A stretch of DNA of 64,000 bases from Dimorphilus gyrociliatus (taxonomy: Eukaryota > Animalia > Annelida): NCBI GenBank assembly GCA_904063045.1, contig CAJFCJ010000005.1:3590165-3654164 (forward strand). The letters are read 5' to 3'. The notes under the pieces are model-generated. The model did not search any database. It was given only the letters and a program-made list of their open reading frames with translations, and was not told where the DNA came from. Positions 50,454 to 58,071 of this stretch are shown here, piece by piece (positions within the stretch are counted from its first letter, which is position 1; each line of letters begins with the position of its first letter). Position numbers and translations under genes: made by a program.

Positions 50454-51923
50454 CTAAAAGAAATCGGAAGCAGCGGATCTAACTCTTTCACTTCTCGACT
50501 TAACTAATGGCGAATACTTGTCTTGAACATTCAATTCTCGTTCACTTTTATGTTCAGTTTGTCTCTTTCTTTTTACTAGAAGGTTATCTGTTAATGATGG
50601 TGTCCTCTTACCCAACAATGTGGGCGTGCTCCTGTCATTTATGGGCGTTGTAGGGGTTTTAGCCTTGGGCGATGGAGTGTAAGACGACTTGAGAGCTTTA
50701 TCCGTTGATGTACGGATGCCCAACTTTCTCTGTAAGTTATGACCAGCTGGAGAAAGTGATGAACTTCCAAATTTTGGTGTATGGAATGACGAGTGTACGT
50801 GTTGTAAAGTTTTATTCTTTTTATCCCGGTGGGCTTTTAAGTTTTTTTCAGAAAGCTCTAGGGCGATCTTATCTCTTTGAGGCAAGTCGGGTACCTTAAA
50901 AATCGGCCCGCTATCAACAGATGGCGTGCTGGGTGGATCTAATCTGGCAGGCGTAGAAGCAATATTACCCCAAGACATAAGTGGCGATTCGTTAACGCCT
51001 GGACAAGGCGACGGGGTAGCCAAATAACCATAGCCCCCGGCACCGGGCGTGGTTGCAGCTAATTCTTTACCATCTATTCCATATTTTCCTTTTAATTGGT
51101 GAATGGCATTGCTAGTTGCGTCCTTCAAACTTTTGGCGGCGTCTTCAACCGACATTTTCTTTTGTAATCTTGTATTTTTATGAACAATTTCTCGAGGCGC
51201 AATTTTTTGTTGTTCAATTTTTTCTTGCTCTGAATATTCCATTCCTTCAGGAAAGTACATAAGTTCATTCTTTCCTTTATAATTCCAAGTAGCTAGGGCC
51301 TTTTGGGGTTCTTTCGCCTGATCTTCTATACTAGGTAAAGCTTTTTGACTATTTGTTGCCTCATCAGCAGAATTTTTATATAACCAGGCGTGTTTTAAAC
51401 GGTGTTTTATATCATTTTCTCGCATAATTTCCGAAAAGGATTCGTTATCTTCGCTGGTATTCTTCGAAAGATATTTATCGAGTGTCAGATTACCATCATT
51501 CTTTTTCTCCGGGTTTATGTCTGGATTTTCCTTCTTTAAACTTTCGTCTTCCGGTCCTATCACTTTTTCACCAGTCAAAGGGTTCATTTCAGACTCGGGT
51601 TGAGGAACGGAGAGTAATGGCGTTCCACCATGGTTCGAATACATAGGAGTAAACTTACCGCCATGTTTCAAATGTAATTCTCTTAATTTGGCGTAATCCT
51701 TCTTCTCAACGGCTTCCATATACTCTTTCTCTGCTTTTAACATAGGTAAGTCGGGGAAAAAATCCCTTTCAATGATGTTTTCTACTTGCTCCGTGTATGT
51801 ATCTTCGCCCAAAACATTTTTCTTTGGTTTTTTGACAAGACCGCTAAATTCTTTACGTTTAGCTACCATCAAGGCTTTCTGTCCAGGTTTATCCAAAACG
51901 AGAGACTTCTCCTTGTTGTCCAT
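50454..51923 (-). CDS. ESS2: Splicing factor ESS-2 homolog (DGCR14/ES2), single coding exon, 489 aa
   Basis: VLGEDTYTEQVENIIERDFFPDL, LTLDKYLSKNTSEDNESFSEI, KNELMYFPEG, GYLATPSPCPGVNESPLMSWG and FKVPDLPQRDKIALEL, with an S/T-P-rich tail. These blocks match the ES2 family. Confidence 0.92.
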   Translation of the reverse strand: MDNKEKSLVLDKPGQKALMVAKRKEFSGLVKKPKKNVLGEDTYTEQVENIIERDFFPDLPMLKAEKEYMEAVEKKDYAKLRELHLKHGGKFTPMYSNHGGTPLLSVPQPESEMNPLTGEKVIGPEDESLKKENPDINPEKKNDGNLTLDKYLSKNTSEDNESFSEIMRENDIKHRLKHAWLYKNSADEATNSQKALPSIEDQAKEPQKALATWNYKGKNELMYFPEGMEYSEQEKIEQQKIAPREIVHKNTRLQKKMSVEDAAKSLKDATSNAIHQLKGKYGIDGKELAATTPGAGGYGYLATPSPCPGVNESPLMSWGNIASTPARLDPPSTPSVDSGPIFKVPDLPQRDKIALELSEKNLKAHRDKKNKTLQHVHSSFHTPKFGSSSLSPAGHNLQRKLGIRTSTDKALKSSYTPSPKAKTPTTPINDRSTPTLLGKRTPSLTDNLLVKRKRQTEHKSERELNVQDKYSPLVKSRSERVRSAASDFF

Positions 51924-52744
51924 TTTTAAGAATATTACGATATTCTTACAAAATAACAGAGAGCGATATTAGAATAGTACTTCAATGCTATGTCGTAAAC
52001 GTTGGGTGTATTTTGGAAAACAAACAACGCCATCTGCTGTTTATTGAATTTCTTTAAAGTAATGGCGGTGAATTTGAAATTCTCTTTTATGAAAAAGATA
52101 CTTAACCCAGTTTAAAAGTCGTAAAAAGGACGAGAGAGGAAGGAACGGAGCAAAATAGCATAAAGAGAAAGGGGCGGGAAAATAAAATATAACTGAAAGC
52201 TATAAAATTGTATTCATACCCCGATTGGGTGCAATAAACATTTAAGAAAAGTCTTAAGAAATAAGAATAAGCTGCGTAAAATTGACTTTTTAGTAAGCAA
52301 ATACAACACATATTTTGGGAAACTAATTAGCAAATAAAGTATGCGAACTTTAAGTCCCGCAACTAAGTAGATGACGTCAGGAGCACGTGATCTTTATACA
52401 TCATGCACAATACGAATAGAGTCGGGCGCTGATAGAGCTTCAGTGGAGACGTTTATTGGTTAACTACACGCGAAGCTATTACTATTTAAAAAAGAAAGAA
52501 AGAAACCAATTGACGGTTGAAACAGGAGGAAAAGAAAACGACTACTTTGCTCTTCTCTCTATGACAATTTTTTTTTACAGTTGGCTAGCTGGAGGTAAAT
52601 GCTAAGACAAATCATGGAGCCTATCTAAAATTGCAAATTGCGGCTTAACTCCACTCTTTAAACTATATAAACTACGACTCGCAAACAACTGTAAAAGAAC
52701 CAATTGGTTGCTTTTCTTCTATTTTATTCAACAGGAAAATAAAT

Positions 52745-55700
52745 ATGCTGAATTCTTTGCTGGCTAAGCTGTCTACTGCAATCGTTTTATTCCATTGTGT
52801 CTTATCAGTGACAAAAGGTAGGATATTTTCCTTTTTCGTGTCTAATCTAAATGTTTATATGTCGAAAGCGAAACAGACACGTAAGAGTTTGTAATACACA
52901 ATCATCGAGAAATAATAGGATTACATCAGCTCTTACACCAAATGTCGATTTTAGCCTCTTTTTTCTCTCTTTCTGCTAATGTTCACTTATACAAACGAAA
53001 ATATGCTTGCGTCTCGAGTATACATTCATTATCCCTTGTCAGATGTACTTTATAACGGAAGTTCGGTTCTAAAGCATTTCCTGTCCAGTTTGAAACTGTC
53101 TCACGCAAACCTCTGCAAAACTATTCCGTATTCATGAGGTATACCTGCACGACTACGGCGCCAGTTAGACGGCATTTAGCCTATATTTTTTACAATGATA
53201 CAATGTGTACGTAATGAAGCGTTTTTTATACATACAATATGCGTGCAATCAATGCAATAAACTGCAAATTACATTGAAATTTCTACGCAAAGACTATAAA
53301 TTTGCCCTATCTAATTAGTGCATAAAACGCTTTGTTTTGTTGAATTCCTCCCACTGTCTTCGGTTACAAAGTGTGCAATTTATATCTTTGATAGTCTTGA
53401 CAGTAGGCCAAACAGTTTATTTATTAGTATGAATTTTAGCAGCTATGAATAATTTGTGACGTATTAGTGCAGTAAATTTCAACTTTCTAGTCCCTATTCC
53501 AAACCTAATGCTCATAAGAGGAACGCCTATAGACTAAAAGACAAAAAGCAGGGAATTAGGCGGCGGTAGGTTCAAACGTTATTTTTTTACGCTGGAGACT
53601 AGCTCGTTAATGTTTTATATACTGTGTATATATATATGAATATACGTAAATGTATGCTATATATATATTCTGTATAAGCGTTGAAATAAAACATAACCGC
53701 TTATAATGTAAAGATAAATAAAGTATTCAACATAGACAAGGATTCCCTCAATTATCTTTATTATATTTTGAAATGCGAAAAAGTAAAGAGCATGGTCTAT
53801 TCTATTAATATAATATGTTTATAATACATGTACATACATGTATATTACCATATATAAATCTATCTATATATATATATATATATACATGTTGGAAGAAACG
53901 CTTAATGTTGCAGAACAGAGACTTATAGAGACGCTCTGTTAGCTCCTGTTAGGATAAAGCAAAAAAAAAAGCTGTATTAAAAAAAATTTTTTTTGAGGGA
54001 GGGGGAGGGAGGTGGAGGGGTGGTGGTAGGAGATTTACAAAAGAAAAAGAAAAAAGCTTTATAATCGCTTTTTATTTCTCTTTTCTCTTAAGTCTTCGAT
54101 TTGTCTTTATCTTTCTCATTTTTTTTTTAATTTTAGCAGACAAACTCAAGGATTTGTCTGTTGTAAAGCGAGTTTTTATTTTATATACAACTCCCGTTGG
54201 TAAAAAAAAAAAGCGCAACCCATTTGCGATGACATTAAATCGTAATTAGCGTAATGTCACTCGTTCCGAGAGATTCTTTCTATTCTGTCTCTTTCTTCGT
54301 CCCCTCCATTTTATCCGACTTCTATCCCTCCCTCCCGACCTTCTTAACAGTGGTAATTATTCAAAACTTTGCATTCGGATGACGGATCTGGTTTTTGTCT
54401 GATGCACGCGATTATTTTAATTAAAAGGGAAGTGTTTAAAAAAAAACAAGTTTCTTCGTGTTTTAATCTCTCCTTTCCCCGCCATCTTTACTACAGTCGG
54501 TTTGTTTGTCAAACTATATCGTTATTTTTGCACTTTACGTCTGTCATCTATTACTTAATTCCATTATATTTCGATGATTGCGTAATTTACATTACAGAAA
54601 TAATCAAGTTAATTCTTTGTCAGATATTGGAACCAGGCGGAAGTTGGTTGTAACAGCTGTAAAAGTAAGTAAGAATGATACATAGAAACTAATAAAAAGG
54701 GGAATTTTTAAGGGTTTTAAGGTTCTTTCGACCAATTGATTTTTTCTTAAGTTCTAATGCATTCCTTCCGGTCTATTCTCTTAACAGGAAGCACCTTATT
54801 TAGATACGACAACGTCGAACAGGACCTCAAGACGTTACGTAGGTTATATCCCGGAGTTGCTAGATCATTTAGCGGCTCGTTTAAAATTTGACTACGAAAT
54901 AAGACTGATAGACGAATACGGCTACTGCAAAAGGACGTCTAGCAGGGACAATTGCACGGTCGATAAGTGGAATGGTATGGTTAAAGAGATCCTTTATAAT
55001 GTGCGTATAAATTACTATAAAAAAATATAAATAAACGTACTCTATCTCCGATATCTATAAAAAAAAGGGTATCGATTAAAGATTACTGCTTAATTTTGCA
55101 GAAAGCCGACTTATCCGGACCGATGCTGATGACTAGAGAACGAGCAAAGTTTTTACAGTTCACGAGCGCCTTATTCTACGATACGGCTTCTGTTCTAATC
55201 CGCCGAGACGAAAGGGAAGATTATAACATTACACTAGCAACAGATTTATGGAAGAAGAGGAGATATTTAGCATTTGGTATTCTGAAATCAGGAGCTGAAA
55301 GTGTGTTCTTAAAGAGGCTATCAAGATCCAGTACGGCGTACAGAAGGTTATATAGCTATCTCAAAAAGCAAAGTCGAATGTGCACTTATTACAAAACGTG
55401 TCTAAGTAAAGTAATAACCGGTATAAGGACAAGGAGGAGGGGAAAAAGGATCGGATTCGCCTTCATACTTATCAGATCCAAAGCGGAATACGAAGCGTTT
55501 AACATAATTCGACGCTCGTTCGACAATAAGCCTCAATGCGATTTAACAGTTACTGATAGTTTCCTTTTTAAAATTCCAAGGGGACTTGCTGTAAGAAAAA
55601 ATGGGGAATTTTCGGAAAAAATTACTCAGGAAATAATTCAAATGGCAAAAGATGGCGTTCTTGCCAATTTATACGCTAGATGGTTCATTGGGTTAACCTG

Positions 55701-55905
55701 CGATAATAGTCTTATCTACCAAGAAAAAGTAAAAGAGAGATTACTAGATGACTATTTTACAGAATATTCTAATTCTATGGGAGAGAACGTTTTCGACGCC
55801 TTTACAAACAACACTCAAAAAATACGTTTATCAATAAGATATATATTATTGTGGTCTTCCTTAATTGCTTTAACAGTAAATCATTATTCACTTACCATTA
55901 TATAA
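52745..55905 (+). CDS. iGluR/IR-derived ligand-binding-domain-only protein (~376 aa, no pore region), exons 52745-52817, 54624-54664, 54788-55000, 55102-55905
   Basis: Exon 1 is signal-peptide-like (MLNSLLAKLSTAIVLFHCVLSVTK). S1 follows: RKLVVTAVKEAPY...YVGYIPELLDHLAARLKFDYEI...WNGMVKEILYNKADLSGPMLMTRERAKFLQFTS. S2 follows: DL...FGILKSG...CD...GLAVRKNG...GVLANLYARWF..C. The summed CDS is 1,131 nt and all phases match. The first exon assignment is less certain than the rest. Confidence 0.8.
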
Positions 55906-58071
55906 GGTAATACAAACAAACTGGTAAATATTTAAAAGTATCTAATCAACCTAATACAAAAGGGAATAATAGTTGTATATATATATATATATATTAAAAA
56001 AACACTACAACCAATACAACGCATTTTATTTATTGTATCTAATTAAATTCAACAGAAAAGAAAAATGGCTACTTTATTTTCTTAATAAAAAATATGGACA
56101 AACTACAAAGAAATGAGGATAGAAAGTAAAAGGATAATAATAACATATATTACATATATACAGAATATTCTATCCCTTTAAGATTCAATTCAATATTGTT
56201 TACTTCACTTGCTTCATTCACAGATTACAACAACTAAAAACATTATATTGATAATAACAAATTTCTTTAAGTATTCATAAAACTTGTTATTATATTATTT
56301 TCTGTCAATCTTTTTATCAGCTGTCATATTTTATTCAATATTTCGTTTTTCTTTTCTTCTCCTCTTTCTCCTTCCTCTCTCCCCCTTCTCCCTTTTTATT
56401 TGTCTCTATATGCTTTTCTATATTCTTATCACCTTTAGGCCTATTTACAATTAGGGAGAAAATTATGGAAAATTTCTGTCATCTTCTTTACGATGATTAG
56501 TATATGATTGATATCGTAGGGTAGCAGAATTTATTATGAGATGGAAGGATTTTACAATACGTTATTATATTTTGCTTCTATCGGTGAAGTTAGACTAAAT
56601 AAATTTATTATTCATTAATGAAATTAAGTTTAATTTATTCTGTGAGAAGTTTATTAATATCATAGAATACTAGATGAAAAACGTTTACATATATATTGCC
56701 TAAAAGCTTTCAATTGTTATTGGTTTCGTACTCTTTTTTAACCGTTTAACGTAACTTAAAGGATAATTGGAAAGATTAAGAATGGGATTATTTTAGAAGA
56801 ATTAGGGACGGGGAAAAAAACCCGTTAATATCCATTTAACAAGGTTTAGATGTTATATTTTAACTCACTATGAAATATTTATTAGAAAGATTCCTTTCTC
56901 TTATTTGCTTAGATATAGGAACGTAATCTTGAAAAAAAATATGTCTACAGATGAGATAAAGTATAATCCTTCCGTTAAAGAATCCCAACTAAGAATTGTT
57001 AACTTTTTTCTTTGTTTTCTCTCTCTCTTTTTCCTTTTGTCCAGTTTTCTCTTTTTTTTTTTTAATCTCTAATGTCACTCAACACACGAAAAGTAGACAA
57101 AGATATAGGTTTTTCTATCTTTTATGACTTTTATACGTTGTAAGGGATCTTTATCTTTCTTTAAATAATAATAGGTTTAAAGCATACATATTAAAAATCA
57201 TATTATATCATTTATATGACAATAAAGTTGTGAAGTTAAATATATCGCAAATATTTCTCTTTCTAAAAATATATAAAATCTGATGTAAAATACAATAATA
57301 TAGAAAACTGATCAGTCAACAATTGTATACAACTAAAGGAGCTATCTTTCTTTAACAGAGAATCATGGGGCAAGGTGTATACAATATCTATTTGAAATGT
57401 ATAAAGACTTATTGATTATATATATATCTATATATATATTGAAATTTGTATATAGACATATATAGATACATATATATATATATATTACATGTAAGTAATC
57501 TAATGTACAACGTTGAATTAAATAATCATTCAATCCTCAATTGATATTCTCCTCTCTTTTTTTCAAAATGTTTTATTAATCGCTTCTTTTATTAATAAAT
57601 ATATATTATAAATACATTACTTTTTATTTACTCTATGAAATAATATTAGACCATTTTATGATTATGGTTTATCTTTTAAACAAAAGTTGACTGTGCAAAT
57701 AATTATCTATTAACTGAAATTTTATATAAGCCTAGTATATTTTTTTTCGTTCTTTTCCTTCCTTCCTTCTCTCTCTCTCTCTATCTCCATCTATCTCTTT
57801 GTTTTTAAAAAAAAAACTGTCATAAAAAGAACATAAAAATATTTTTATAAATATTTACACTAGAGTTTAATAAATTTTATATTTTTTATTAATGTTTAAA
57901 AGAAAATCAGAAAAAGAGAGCAAATAGAAGAATGTTAACAAAATTTTGAAGAGAAAGGAAGGGAGTGAAAGAGGTAGAAGGTTTACAAAAAAGAGTAAAA
58001 AATAATAGCAAGACAAATCTAAAGGTGAAGAGAAAGATTGAAAAATTTCTCCGTCTTTTTTAAAACTAGTT

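Follow-up and report, generated by a model that had tools for sequence, protein, structure and literature searches.

A channel-less S1S2 protein derived from ionotropic glutamate receptors in the annelid Dimorphilus gyrociliatus

The miniature marine annelid Dimorphilus gyrociliatus carries a gene whose product is the ligand-binding clamshell of an ionotropic glutamate receptor (iGluR) without the channel. The gene lies at positions 52745-55905 on the plus strand of the window analyzed here, a 64,000-nt stretch of contig CAJFCJ010000005.1 (assembly GCA_904063045.1); it has four coding exons and encodes 376 amino acids (aa). The protein is laid out as signal peptide, S1, a linker of eight residues, S2, a short stalk, and a C-terminal hydrophobic segment. 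Its architecture, splicing, conservation, and fold as a channel-less S1S2 protein are demonstrated by the data below, and with them the loss of the amino-terminal domain, the whole pore module (M1, pore loop, and M3), and the cytoplasmic tail of an iGluR ancestor. With good confidence, we read the locus as a transcribed and selectively maintained iGluR-derived gene that encodes a pore-less, tethered clamshell and belongs to a wider annelid family of such proteins. The result is an iGluR-derived protein with an architecture undescribed in the literature that we searched.

Transcript, gene structure, and selective maintenance

That the channel-less gene is transcribed and spliced is demonstrated by a 2191-nt transcript contig from a 2017 run (X2), which crosses four GT..AG joints (52817/54624, 54664/54788, 55000/55102, and 55906/56056). 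The first two of these joints are also present in a contig from a relative (X11; about 88% nucleotide identity). In exon 4, a single open reading frame (ORF; 55096-55905) reads from the end of S1 (FLQFTSALFYDTASVLIRR) through the linker DEREDYNI directly into S2 (TLATDLW...FGILKSG...) and on to the stop codon. This S1-S2 junction is colinear in five sources, namely a DNA contig (X3), the transcript contig, the contig of the relative, and two Logan assemblies of another species (L001 and L002); the DNA contig matches the whole stretch letter for letter, although it may itself be the source of the window. The 5' untranslated region (UTR) reaches upstream to about 52403, and contig 7 of X2 spans 52500-52817 on the side of exon 1. 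Two other candidate acceptors of exon 2, at 54609 and 54637, were rejected because the RNA joint sets the start of this exon at 54624. Within the window, tblastn with family members revealed neither hidden exons nor further copies, leaving this single gene only.

An ortholog with 73% protein identity (P0002) is found on Logan contigs from two samples. It has all four coding exons (exon 1 at 5119-5191 of L001), with identical lengths of exons 1 to 3, the same phases, and the same junction (NEKEDYNI), and the longer of its contigs is syntenic with the window, with a Fat-type cadherin and an Es2 gene upstream in both. Amino acid identity is 80% for exon 3 and reaches 100% for the pocket-forming segments; the pair Cys203/Cys209 and the insertion RTRRRGKR are fully conserved as well, and the hydrophobic tail is conserved more strongly than the stalk that precedes it. 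The ratio of nonsynonymous to synonymous substitution rates (dN/dS, Nei-Gojobori) between the two orthologs is 0.158 overall at a dS of 0.96, with values of 0.10 for S1, 0.11 for S2, and 0.42 for the stalk. The neighboring Es2 gene has a dS of 0.93 (omega 0.085), which calibrates the divergence estimate for our gene: silent sites of the two species have diverged widely, and the constraint is genuine. Such a low dN/dS at this silent divergence, together with the same exons and junction in a syntenic ortholog, shows the gene to be neither a pseudogene nor an assembly artefact.

Exon 4 is 100% identical to the public gene model DgyrCDS3954 (P0001; 275 aa, window 54976-55905), which is annotated with SBP_bac_3 only. 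This model starts at an internal methionine of exon 3 (MVKEILYN...) and is without exons 1 and 2 and most of exon 3; it is therefore N-terminally truncated, with the signal peptide and the first half or most of S1 missing, and is corrected by the RNA-supported product of 376 aa. Such a 275-aa fragment with a purely bacterial label, and the resemblance of exon 4 alone to a bacterial family-3 protein in Pfam, could suggest that the gene is a remnant in decay, that it is an artefact of annotation or assembly, or that a solute-binding gene of bacterial origin is present through contamination or transfer. We give this explanation next to no credence in view of the four spliceosomal introns seen in RNA, a dN/dS of 0.16 with an intact frame in two species, the conserved synteny with animal genes, the coverage of the whole stretch by the DNA contig, and the combination of an animal-type S1 (PF10613 and WNGMV) with the S2 disulfide of iGluRs.

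The original prediction, made from the letters of this DNA, had described a maintained gene rather than a broken fragment, with a signal-peptide exon, intact splice phases, the WNGMV signature, the S2 cysteines QCD...GLTC, and an S1 that passes into S2 through DEREDYNI inside one exon with no sequence left for a pore. This picture holds: DNA and RNA contigs have the same junction, the assembled transcript contains it without M1-M3, all of the elements are present with intact phases in the RNA and in the ortholog, and maintenance is borne out by spliced RNA, the syntenic ortholog, and purifying selection where neutral evolution might have been found. One correction comes from the RNA, which places exon 2 at 54624-54664 and adds an intron in the 3'UTR.

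Domain architecture and ligand pocket

Searches and folding were run on exon translations and on the truncated public model, and the structural model covers residues 102-376. In Pfam, Lig_chan-Glu_bd (PF10613) matches exon 3 with an E value of 9.3e-11 and 42.3 bits (cutoff 30), SBP_bac_3 (PF00497) matches exon 4 at residues 3-195, and no exon of the gene is matched by Lig_chan (PF00060), the family of the pore module. The hydropathy profile contains only two hydrophobic segments, residues 1-22 (the signal peptide) and 353-376 (the extreme C-terminus), and none between S1 and S2, which are joined inside one exon in DNA and RNA alike. An amino-terminal domain and a cytoplasmic tail are absent, and the mature protein opens with the first strand of S1 (KLVVTAVKEAPYL). 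Among PDB sequences, exon 4 is matched best by engineered S1S2 constructs (GluN1, GluA2/3, and GluK2), each of which is colinear with it across the junction. An AlphaFold model from an alignment of 27 sequences has a mean predicted local distance difference test score (pLDDT) of 79.5, with the tail predicted as a helix, and a Foldseek search with this model lists ligand-binding cores of AMPA, kainate, delta, and NMDA receptors on top at E values of about 1e-10. The clamshell is thus iGluR-derived, as originally proposed, with an iGluR S1 and a bilobed S2 identified by PF10613, WNGMV, PF00497, the colinearity with S1S2 constructs, the fold match, and the S2 disulfide C255/C309 (QCD...GLTC). The protein is basic (isoelectric point 9.7). 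Six of its seven cysteines form three plausible pairs (85/94, 203/209, and 255/309). The ortholog retains these pairs together with three N-glycosylation sequons, one of which lies in the linker (N151); this fits a fully extracellular protein.

The binding pocket combines conserved and replaced positions. All 27 family sequences share the arginine that binds the ligand carboxylate, and the window protein keeps the lid tyrosine (YVGYIPELL). Alignments to GluA2 and GluN1 do not recover the canonical agonist triad, of which the arginine is kept and the Ser/Thr and Asp/Glu positions are replaced. The equivalents of GluA2 S654/T655 are Ala/Glu (hydrophobic in the family), the equivalent of T480 is leucine compared to tyrosine or phenylalanine in 20 of 21 annelid-type members, and an isoleucine stands in place of the residue that holds the ligand amino group (GluA2 E705, GluN1 D732). 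With this isoleucine, the ligand is unlikely to be glutamate held in the canonical manner. As far as can be judged from the residues that line it, the pocket is most likely functional for a small carboxylate-bearing ligand that would not be held like glutamate, and a role of the protein as a "glutamate buffer" appears unlikely.

Related channel-less proteins, tethering, and mode of action

A HMMER profile of the two orthologs was searched against 1.84 billion cluster representatives at a threshold of E <= 0.001 and gave 15 matches in all, with no channel-bearing iGluR among them. Most are proteins of 215-290 aa that are matched by one colinear stretch across the junction, the exceptions being the query itself, a 4365-aa protein with several matching stretches, a 144-aa fragment, and a 276-aa protein matched in two stretches (P0008). 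Bit scores were 49-36 on family members compared to at most 29 on the S1S2 constructs of the PDB, which are matched equally colinearly. Word-indexed homolog searches gave just 2, 9, and 10 matches, and the exhaustive HMMER search was needed to reach the family. The 4365-aa protein (P0005) has six stretches that match the S2 part of the profile and may be a multi-clamshell protein.

The sequences of this family run from the end of S1 through a short linker and S2 to a Ser/Asn/Gly-rich stretch and a hydrophobic C-terminus, the latter present in 20 of 22 annelid-type members. The same layout is found in the window protein, with its signal peptide, S1-S2 fusion, and hydrophobic C-terminus and without an amino-terminal domain (compare P0017). 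In Lamellibrachia satsuma, a 342-aa protein (KAI0219233.1) is a complete member, from signal peptide through S1 and S2 to the tail; its alignment with GluA2 S1S2 (E 1e-52) runs from one end to the other and reaches GluA2 residue 824. Its gene (L003) has four coding exons for residues 1-27, 28-49, 50-117, and 118-342 and shares with the window gene the introns at two S1 positions, one after the first S1 strand and one before "[EK]AD[IL]"; many prokaryote-style ORF calls for other members have their start in the acceptor's "...FQ", just ahead of "EADIAA" and thus at the same exon boundary. Further short structural look-alikes are present in the AlphaFold database (DgyrCDS1714 of 316 aa and R7U7X4 of 272 aa), and the ESM Atlas holds a 147-member cluster of such short proteins that is commonest in annelids. 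The original prediction knew of no characterized animal equivalent. This stands insofar as natural iGluR ligand-binding proteins without a channel are not described in the full-text literature searched, and iGluRs are not a topic of the D. gyrociliatus genome paper; the protein is not unique, given the ortholog, the Lamellibrachia protein, other short members of the family, and the forms found in mites.

These mite proteins, from the house-dust mites Dermatophagoides pteronyssinus and Euroglyphus maynei (P0034, P0035, and P0013), measure 260-296 aa and are secreted S1S2 forms that have a signal peptide but lack both the pore and the hydrophobic tail. The agonist triad Arg/Thr/Glu is intact in them, and they may still bind amino acids; a soluble iGluR domain that possibly binds amino acids appears to have arisen separately in these mites. 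A further channel-less member (P0006; L007 5001-5855, also on L008 and L009) occurs in the relative with the ortholog; it forms one open frame of 284 aa that includes part of S1 and is nearer to the typical annelid family than the window protein. Two further clusters in the ESM Atlas, of SBP_bac_3 / Lig_chan-Glu_bd proteins of 337-372 aa, are labelled Nucleocytoviricota (giant viruses).

Based on architecture, exon plan, and best matches, it seems likely that the window gene is a fast-evolved member of the wider annelid family of channel-less, tethered S1S2 proteins. It differs from the family in an extra S1 cysteine pair, the lobe-2 insertion with CxxxxxC and RTRRRGKR, its isoelectric point of 9.7, and the 3'UTR intron. 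Several observations weigh against our overall reading of the locus. The evidence for expression consists of assembled contigs from one D. gyrociliatus transcriptome plus one relative. The position equivalent to E705, isoleucine here, is proline in 18 of 21 annelid-type members and glutamate in the mite proteins. The shared S1 introns might be ancestral to channel-bearing iGluR genes too. In a maximum-likelihood tree of 26 channel-less proteins only, the window protein sits on a branch of 3.55 substitutions per site, so long that long-branch attraction keeps this tree from telling common descent from independent loss of the channel. Candidate omega sites for a glycosylphosphatidylinositol (GPI) anchor, NNT here and NAN in the ortholog, are not obvious, and the window tail gives no significant match to M4. 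Finally, the tail codons (55828-55902) have a dS of 0.21 on about 19 silent sites compared to 0.96 for the whole gene, so that conservation of the tail may partly be explained at the RNA level by splicing or regulation.

Some of these points would be expected if the window protein had arisen by a separate truncation of another iGluR or ionotropic receptor (IR) and merely converged on the same architecture. The very long branch with its floating position, an identity to family members of only about 25%, the isoleucine in place of the family's proline, the extra cysteine pairs, and the S2 insertion all fit such an independent loss, as does the top PDB match of the window protein to GluN1, whereas the wider family matches AMPA receptors best; the mites, moreover, show that channel-less S1S2 proteins arose more than once. 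We nevertheless regard a separate truncation as improbable, since the search of all proteins is topped by the channel-less family with no channel-bearing iGluR at E 0.001, the four-exon plan and the position of the junction agree with the Lamellibrachia gene, and the overall layout with its terminal hydrophobic tail is that of the family.

The original prediction had left open whether the protein is secreted or surface-tethered; an extracellular clamshell is what we find, and the hydrophobic tail argues for a tethered rather than a freely secreted form. The layout is that of GPI-anchored proteins, with a signal peptide and a C-terminal hydrophobic stretch in which eight uncharged residues follow the core and no cytoplasmic residues remain. 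From these features we infer a surface-tethered ligand-binding protein that could serve as co-receptor, presenter, or buffer. The roles proposed originally (ligand buffer, decoy, transporter, or chemosensory co-factor) are likewise putative. The protein would enter the secretory pathway, become glycosylated, and stay on the outer face of the membrane via a GPI anchor or a terminal helix, where the clamshell would close on a small carboxylate-bearing molecule other than glutamate held in the classical way. Without a pore it could not signal by ion flux. The most likely mode would be that of a solute-binding protein: with its ligand captured at the surface, the protein would modulate a receptor, channel, or other membrane partner or hand the ligand over to it. 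Second to this, it might buffer the ligand locally.

A third and less likely mode is that of an accessory subunit, in which the tail, as a remnant of M4, would insert next to the pore of a complete channel complex (iGluR or IR) encoded by other genes, and the clamshell would act as an extra regulatory ligand sensor. The tail of the Lamellibrachia protein starts at the pre-M4/M4 boundary with "LVNVGG", similar to "LSNVAG" of GluA1, suggesting that the family tail is probably a shortened M4, and the window tail is better conserved than the stalk. Yet every M4 site in GluA2 tetramers is occupied by the subunits of the receptor themselves, as in the known tetramers generally, the window tail is without detectable M4 similarity, and tail sequences differ widely among family members and, in the manner of GPI signals, have no cytoplasmic anchor at their end. 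We consider such a subunit quite unlikely. Lower still is the probability we assign to a free binding protein in body fluid, nearer to the acetylcholine-binding protein (AChBP), that would be released by removal of the tail or by a furin-type protease cutting at RTRRRGKR. Full conservation of the polybasic motif R-x-R/K-R in the ortholog would fit this, as would the frequent shedding of GPI-anchored proteins and the tail-less mite relatives; but in the model this loop sits within lobe 2, flanked by a helix and a core strand, so that cutting would split the domain, and the tail is conserved.

Going beyond the tethered clamshell as such, a tentative and so far rather doubtful extension would be that the family as a whole signals without a pore by docking on a membrane partner like bacterial solute-binding proteins, and that the locus described here was neofunctionalized for a non-amino-acid ligand under tight and conserved cis-regulation. 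If this were true, glutamate-receptor biology would gain a new branch that is not ionotropic, and with it a natural S1S2 reagent.

Surroundings of the gene and comparison with known systems

The features of the locus are listed in the table below. Directly upstream, on the opposite strand, lies a single-exon Es2-family gene of 489 aa that is syntenic in the relative. Four blocks in intron 1 and one upstream of the gene are 83-86% identical to the relative (L001), compared to about 77% for the coding exons, a silent divergence of about 0.95, and about 52% for the downstream kilobase. The intron blocks, at 84-86% identity, show no mismatch periodicity of three bases and no long ORF. The blocks hold perfectly conserved TAATTA-type sites, and upstream a pair formed by TGACGTCA and CACGTG lies near the transcript start; the blocks are likely to be conserved regulatory elements. 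Low-depth RNA contigs are also found within intron 1, and Rfam on 52000-56500 gave sub-threshold microRNA-like matches only, in TA-rich repeats. The stop codon precedes a splice donor by one base in the window gene (TAA G/GTAAT, the slash marking the joint) and in its ortholog (TGA G/GTAAT), which is not so in the other family members L003, L004, and L007.

Table. Features of the channel-less gene and its surroundings (window positions)
Feature	Positions	Strand	Description
Es2-family gene	50454-51923	-	single exon, 489 aa
Conserved upstream block	52319-52501		
Coding sequence	52745-52817 + 54624-54664 + 54788-55000 + 55102-55905	+	RNA-supported
Exon 1, coding part	52745-52817	+	start codon and signal peptide (MLNSLLAKLSTAIVLFHCVLSVTK); ends in phase 1
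Intron 1	52818-54623	+	1806 nt, GT..AG; joint in X2; holds conserved non-coding blocks
Conserved blocks of intron 1	52886-53326, 53404-53637, 53898-53971, 54173-54428		
Exon 2	54624-54664	+	start of S1 (DIGTRRKLVVTAVK); 41 nt, ortholog exon of equal length; joints in X2 and relative X11
Exon 3	54788-55000	+	S1 core: lid Tyr (YVGYIPELL), Cys85/Cys94 pair, WNGMV; PF10613
Exon 4	55102-55906	+	end of S1, linker, whole S2, stalk, hydrophobic tail, stop codon (55903-55905); single open frame
Arg123 codon	55141-55143	+	equivalent of GluA2 R485 / GluN1 R523, from alignment to GluN1 S1S2
S1-S2 linker DEREDYNI	55207-55230	+	in the place of M1-M2-M3 of channel subunits; sequon N151-I-T
S2 insertion, lineage-specific	55381-55449	+	Cys203/Cys209 pair and polybasic loop RTRRRGKR; gap in GluN1 and in the family
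C-terminal hydrophobic tail	55831-55902	+	RYILLWSSLIALTVNHYSLTII; no charged residue after it; candidate GPI-attachment signal or terminal membrane helix
3'UTR intron	55907-56055	+	149 nt; begins one base past the stop codon; joint 55906/56056 in X2

Among natural proteins, the closest in design are the annelid channel-less proteins (KAI0219233.1, DgyrCDS1714, and P0003-P0033), which share with the window gene the S1-S2 fusion within the last coding exon, the invariant arginine, and the S2 disulfide. Bacterial family-3 solute-binding proteins (GlnH/HisJ type, PF00497) have the same bilobed fold as stand-alone proteins and offer the likely working model of binding, closing, and docking, but unlike these the window gene has spliceosomal introns, PF10613, WNGMV, and the S2 disulfide of iGluRs; it is not a prokaryotic gene but goes back to a channel ancestor and has become stand-alone again secondarily. 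Kainate-binding proteins and IRs resemble the window protein in the absence of an amino-terminal domain but keep M1-M3 and M4 and are channel subunits. IR tuning subunits, like the window protein, lose one or more residues of the Arg/Thr/Glu triad and bind ligands other than glutamate.

The nearest analogue found in the literature is SmGBP of Schistosoma mansoni (PMC3206071). This truncated metabotropic glutamate receptor is a spiralian Venus-flytrap binding module without the transmembrane signalling part. It differs in its descent from class C G protein-coupled receptors, with the type-1 periplasmic-binding-protein fold, and not from iGluRs. The AChBP of molluscs and annelids, to which the protein had been likened from the start, follows the same evolutionary logic, in that the extracellular ligand-binding part of a channel became a pore-less stand-alone gene. 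The likeness ends there, since AChBP has the pentameric fold of Cys-loop receptors, is soluble, and keeps its transmitter site, whereas the window protein is bilobed, probably tethered, and has lost the residue for the ligand amino group; the comparison is an analogy of logic and not a matter of membership. If the window protein and its relatives do bind ligands, an iGluR clamshell would work outside the channel in animals as co-receptor, presenter, or buffer, as AChBP does for Cys-loop receptors. Such proteins would then be an unrecognized component of chemosensory or synaptic signalling in annelids and would provide naturally soluble or tetherable binding domains for ligand screening.

The most direct counterparts of the protein are the laboratory constructs GluA2 S1S2J, GluN1 S1S2, and GluK2 S1S2, in which a short linker replaces M1-M3 in the same topology. 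Even the spacing of the junction is similar, with 25 residues from "RR" at the end of S1 to "GIL" in S2 compared to about 22 in GluA2 S1S2 (1ftk). Unlike these constructs, the window protein is natural, with its S1-S2 junction in one exon, its own signal peptide, a hydrophobic tail, isoleucine at the E705 position, and a disulfide-bonded polybasic insertion in lobe 2; its changed pocket, new disulfide, and polybasic loop illustrate how far such a domain can diverge under constraint. The S1S2 core that structural biologists cut by hand thus appears here as cut by evolution, kept under selection, and probably tethered to the cell surface.

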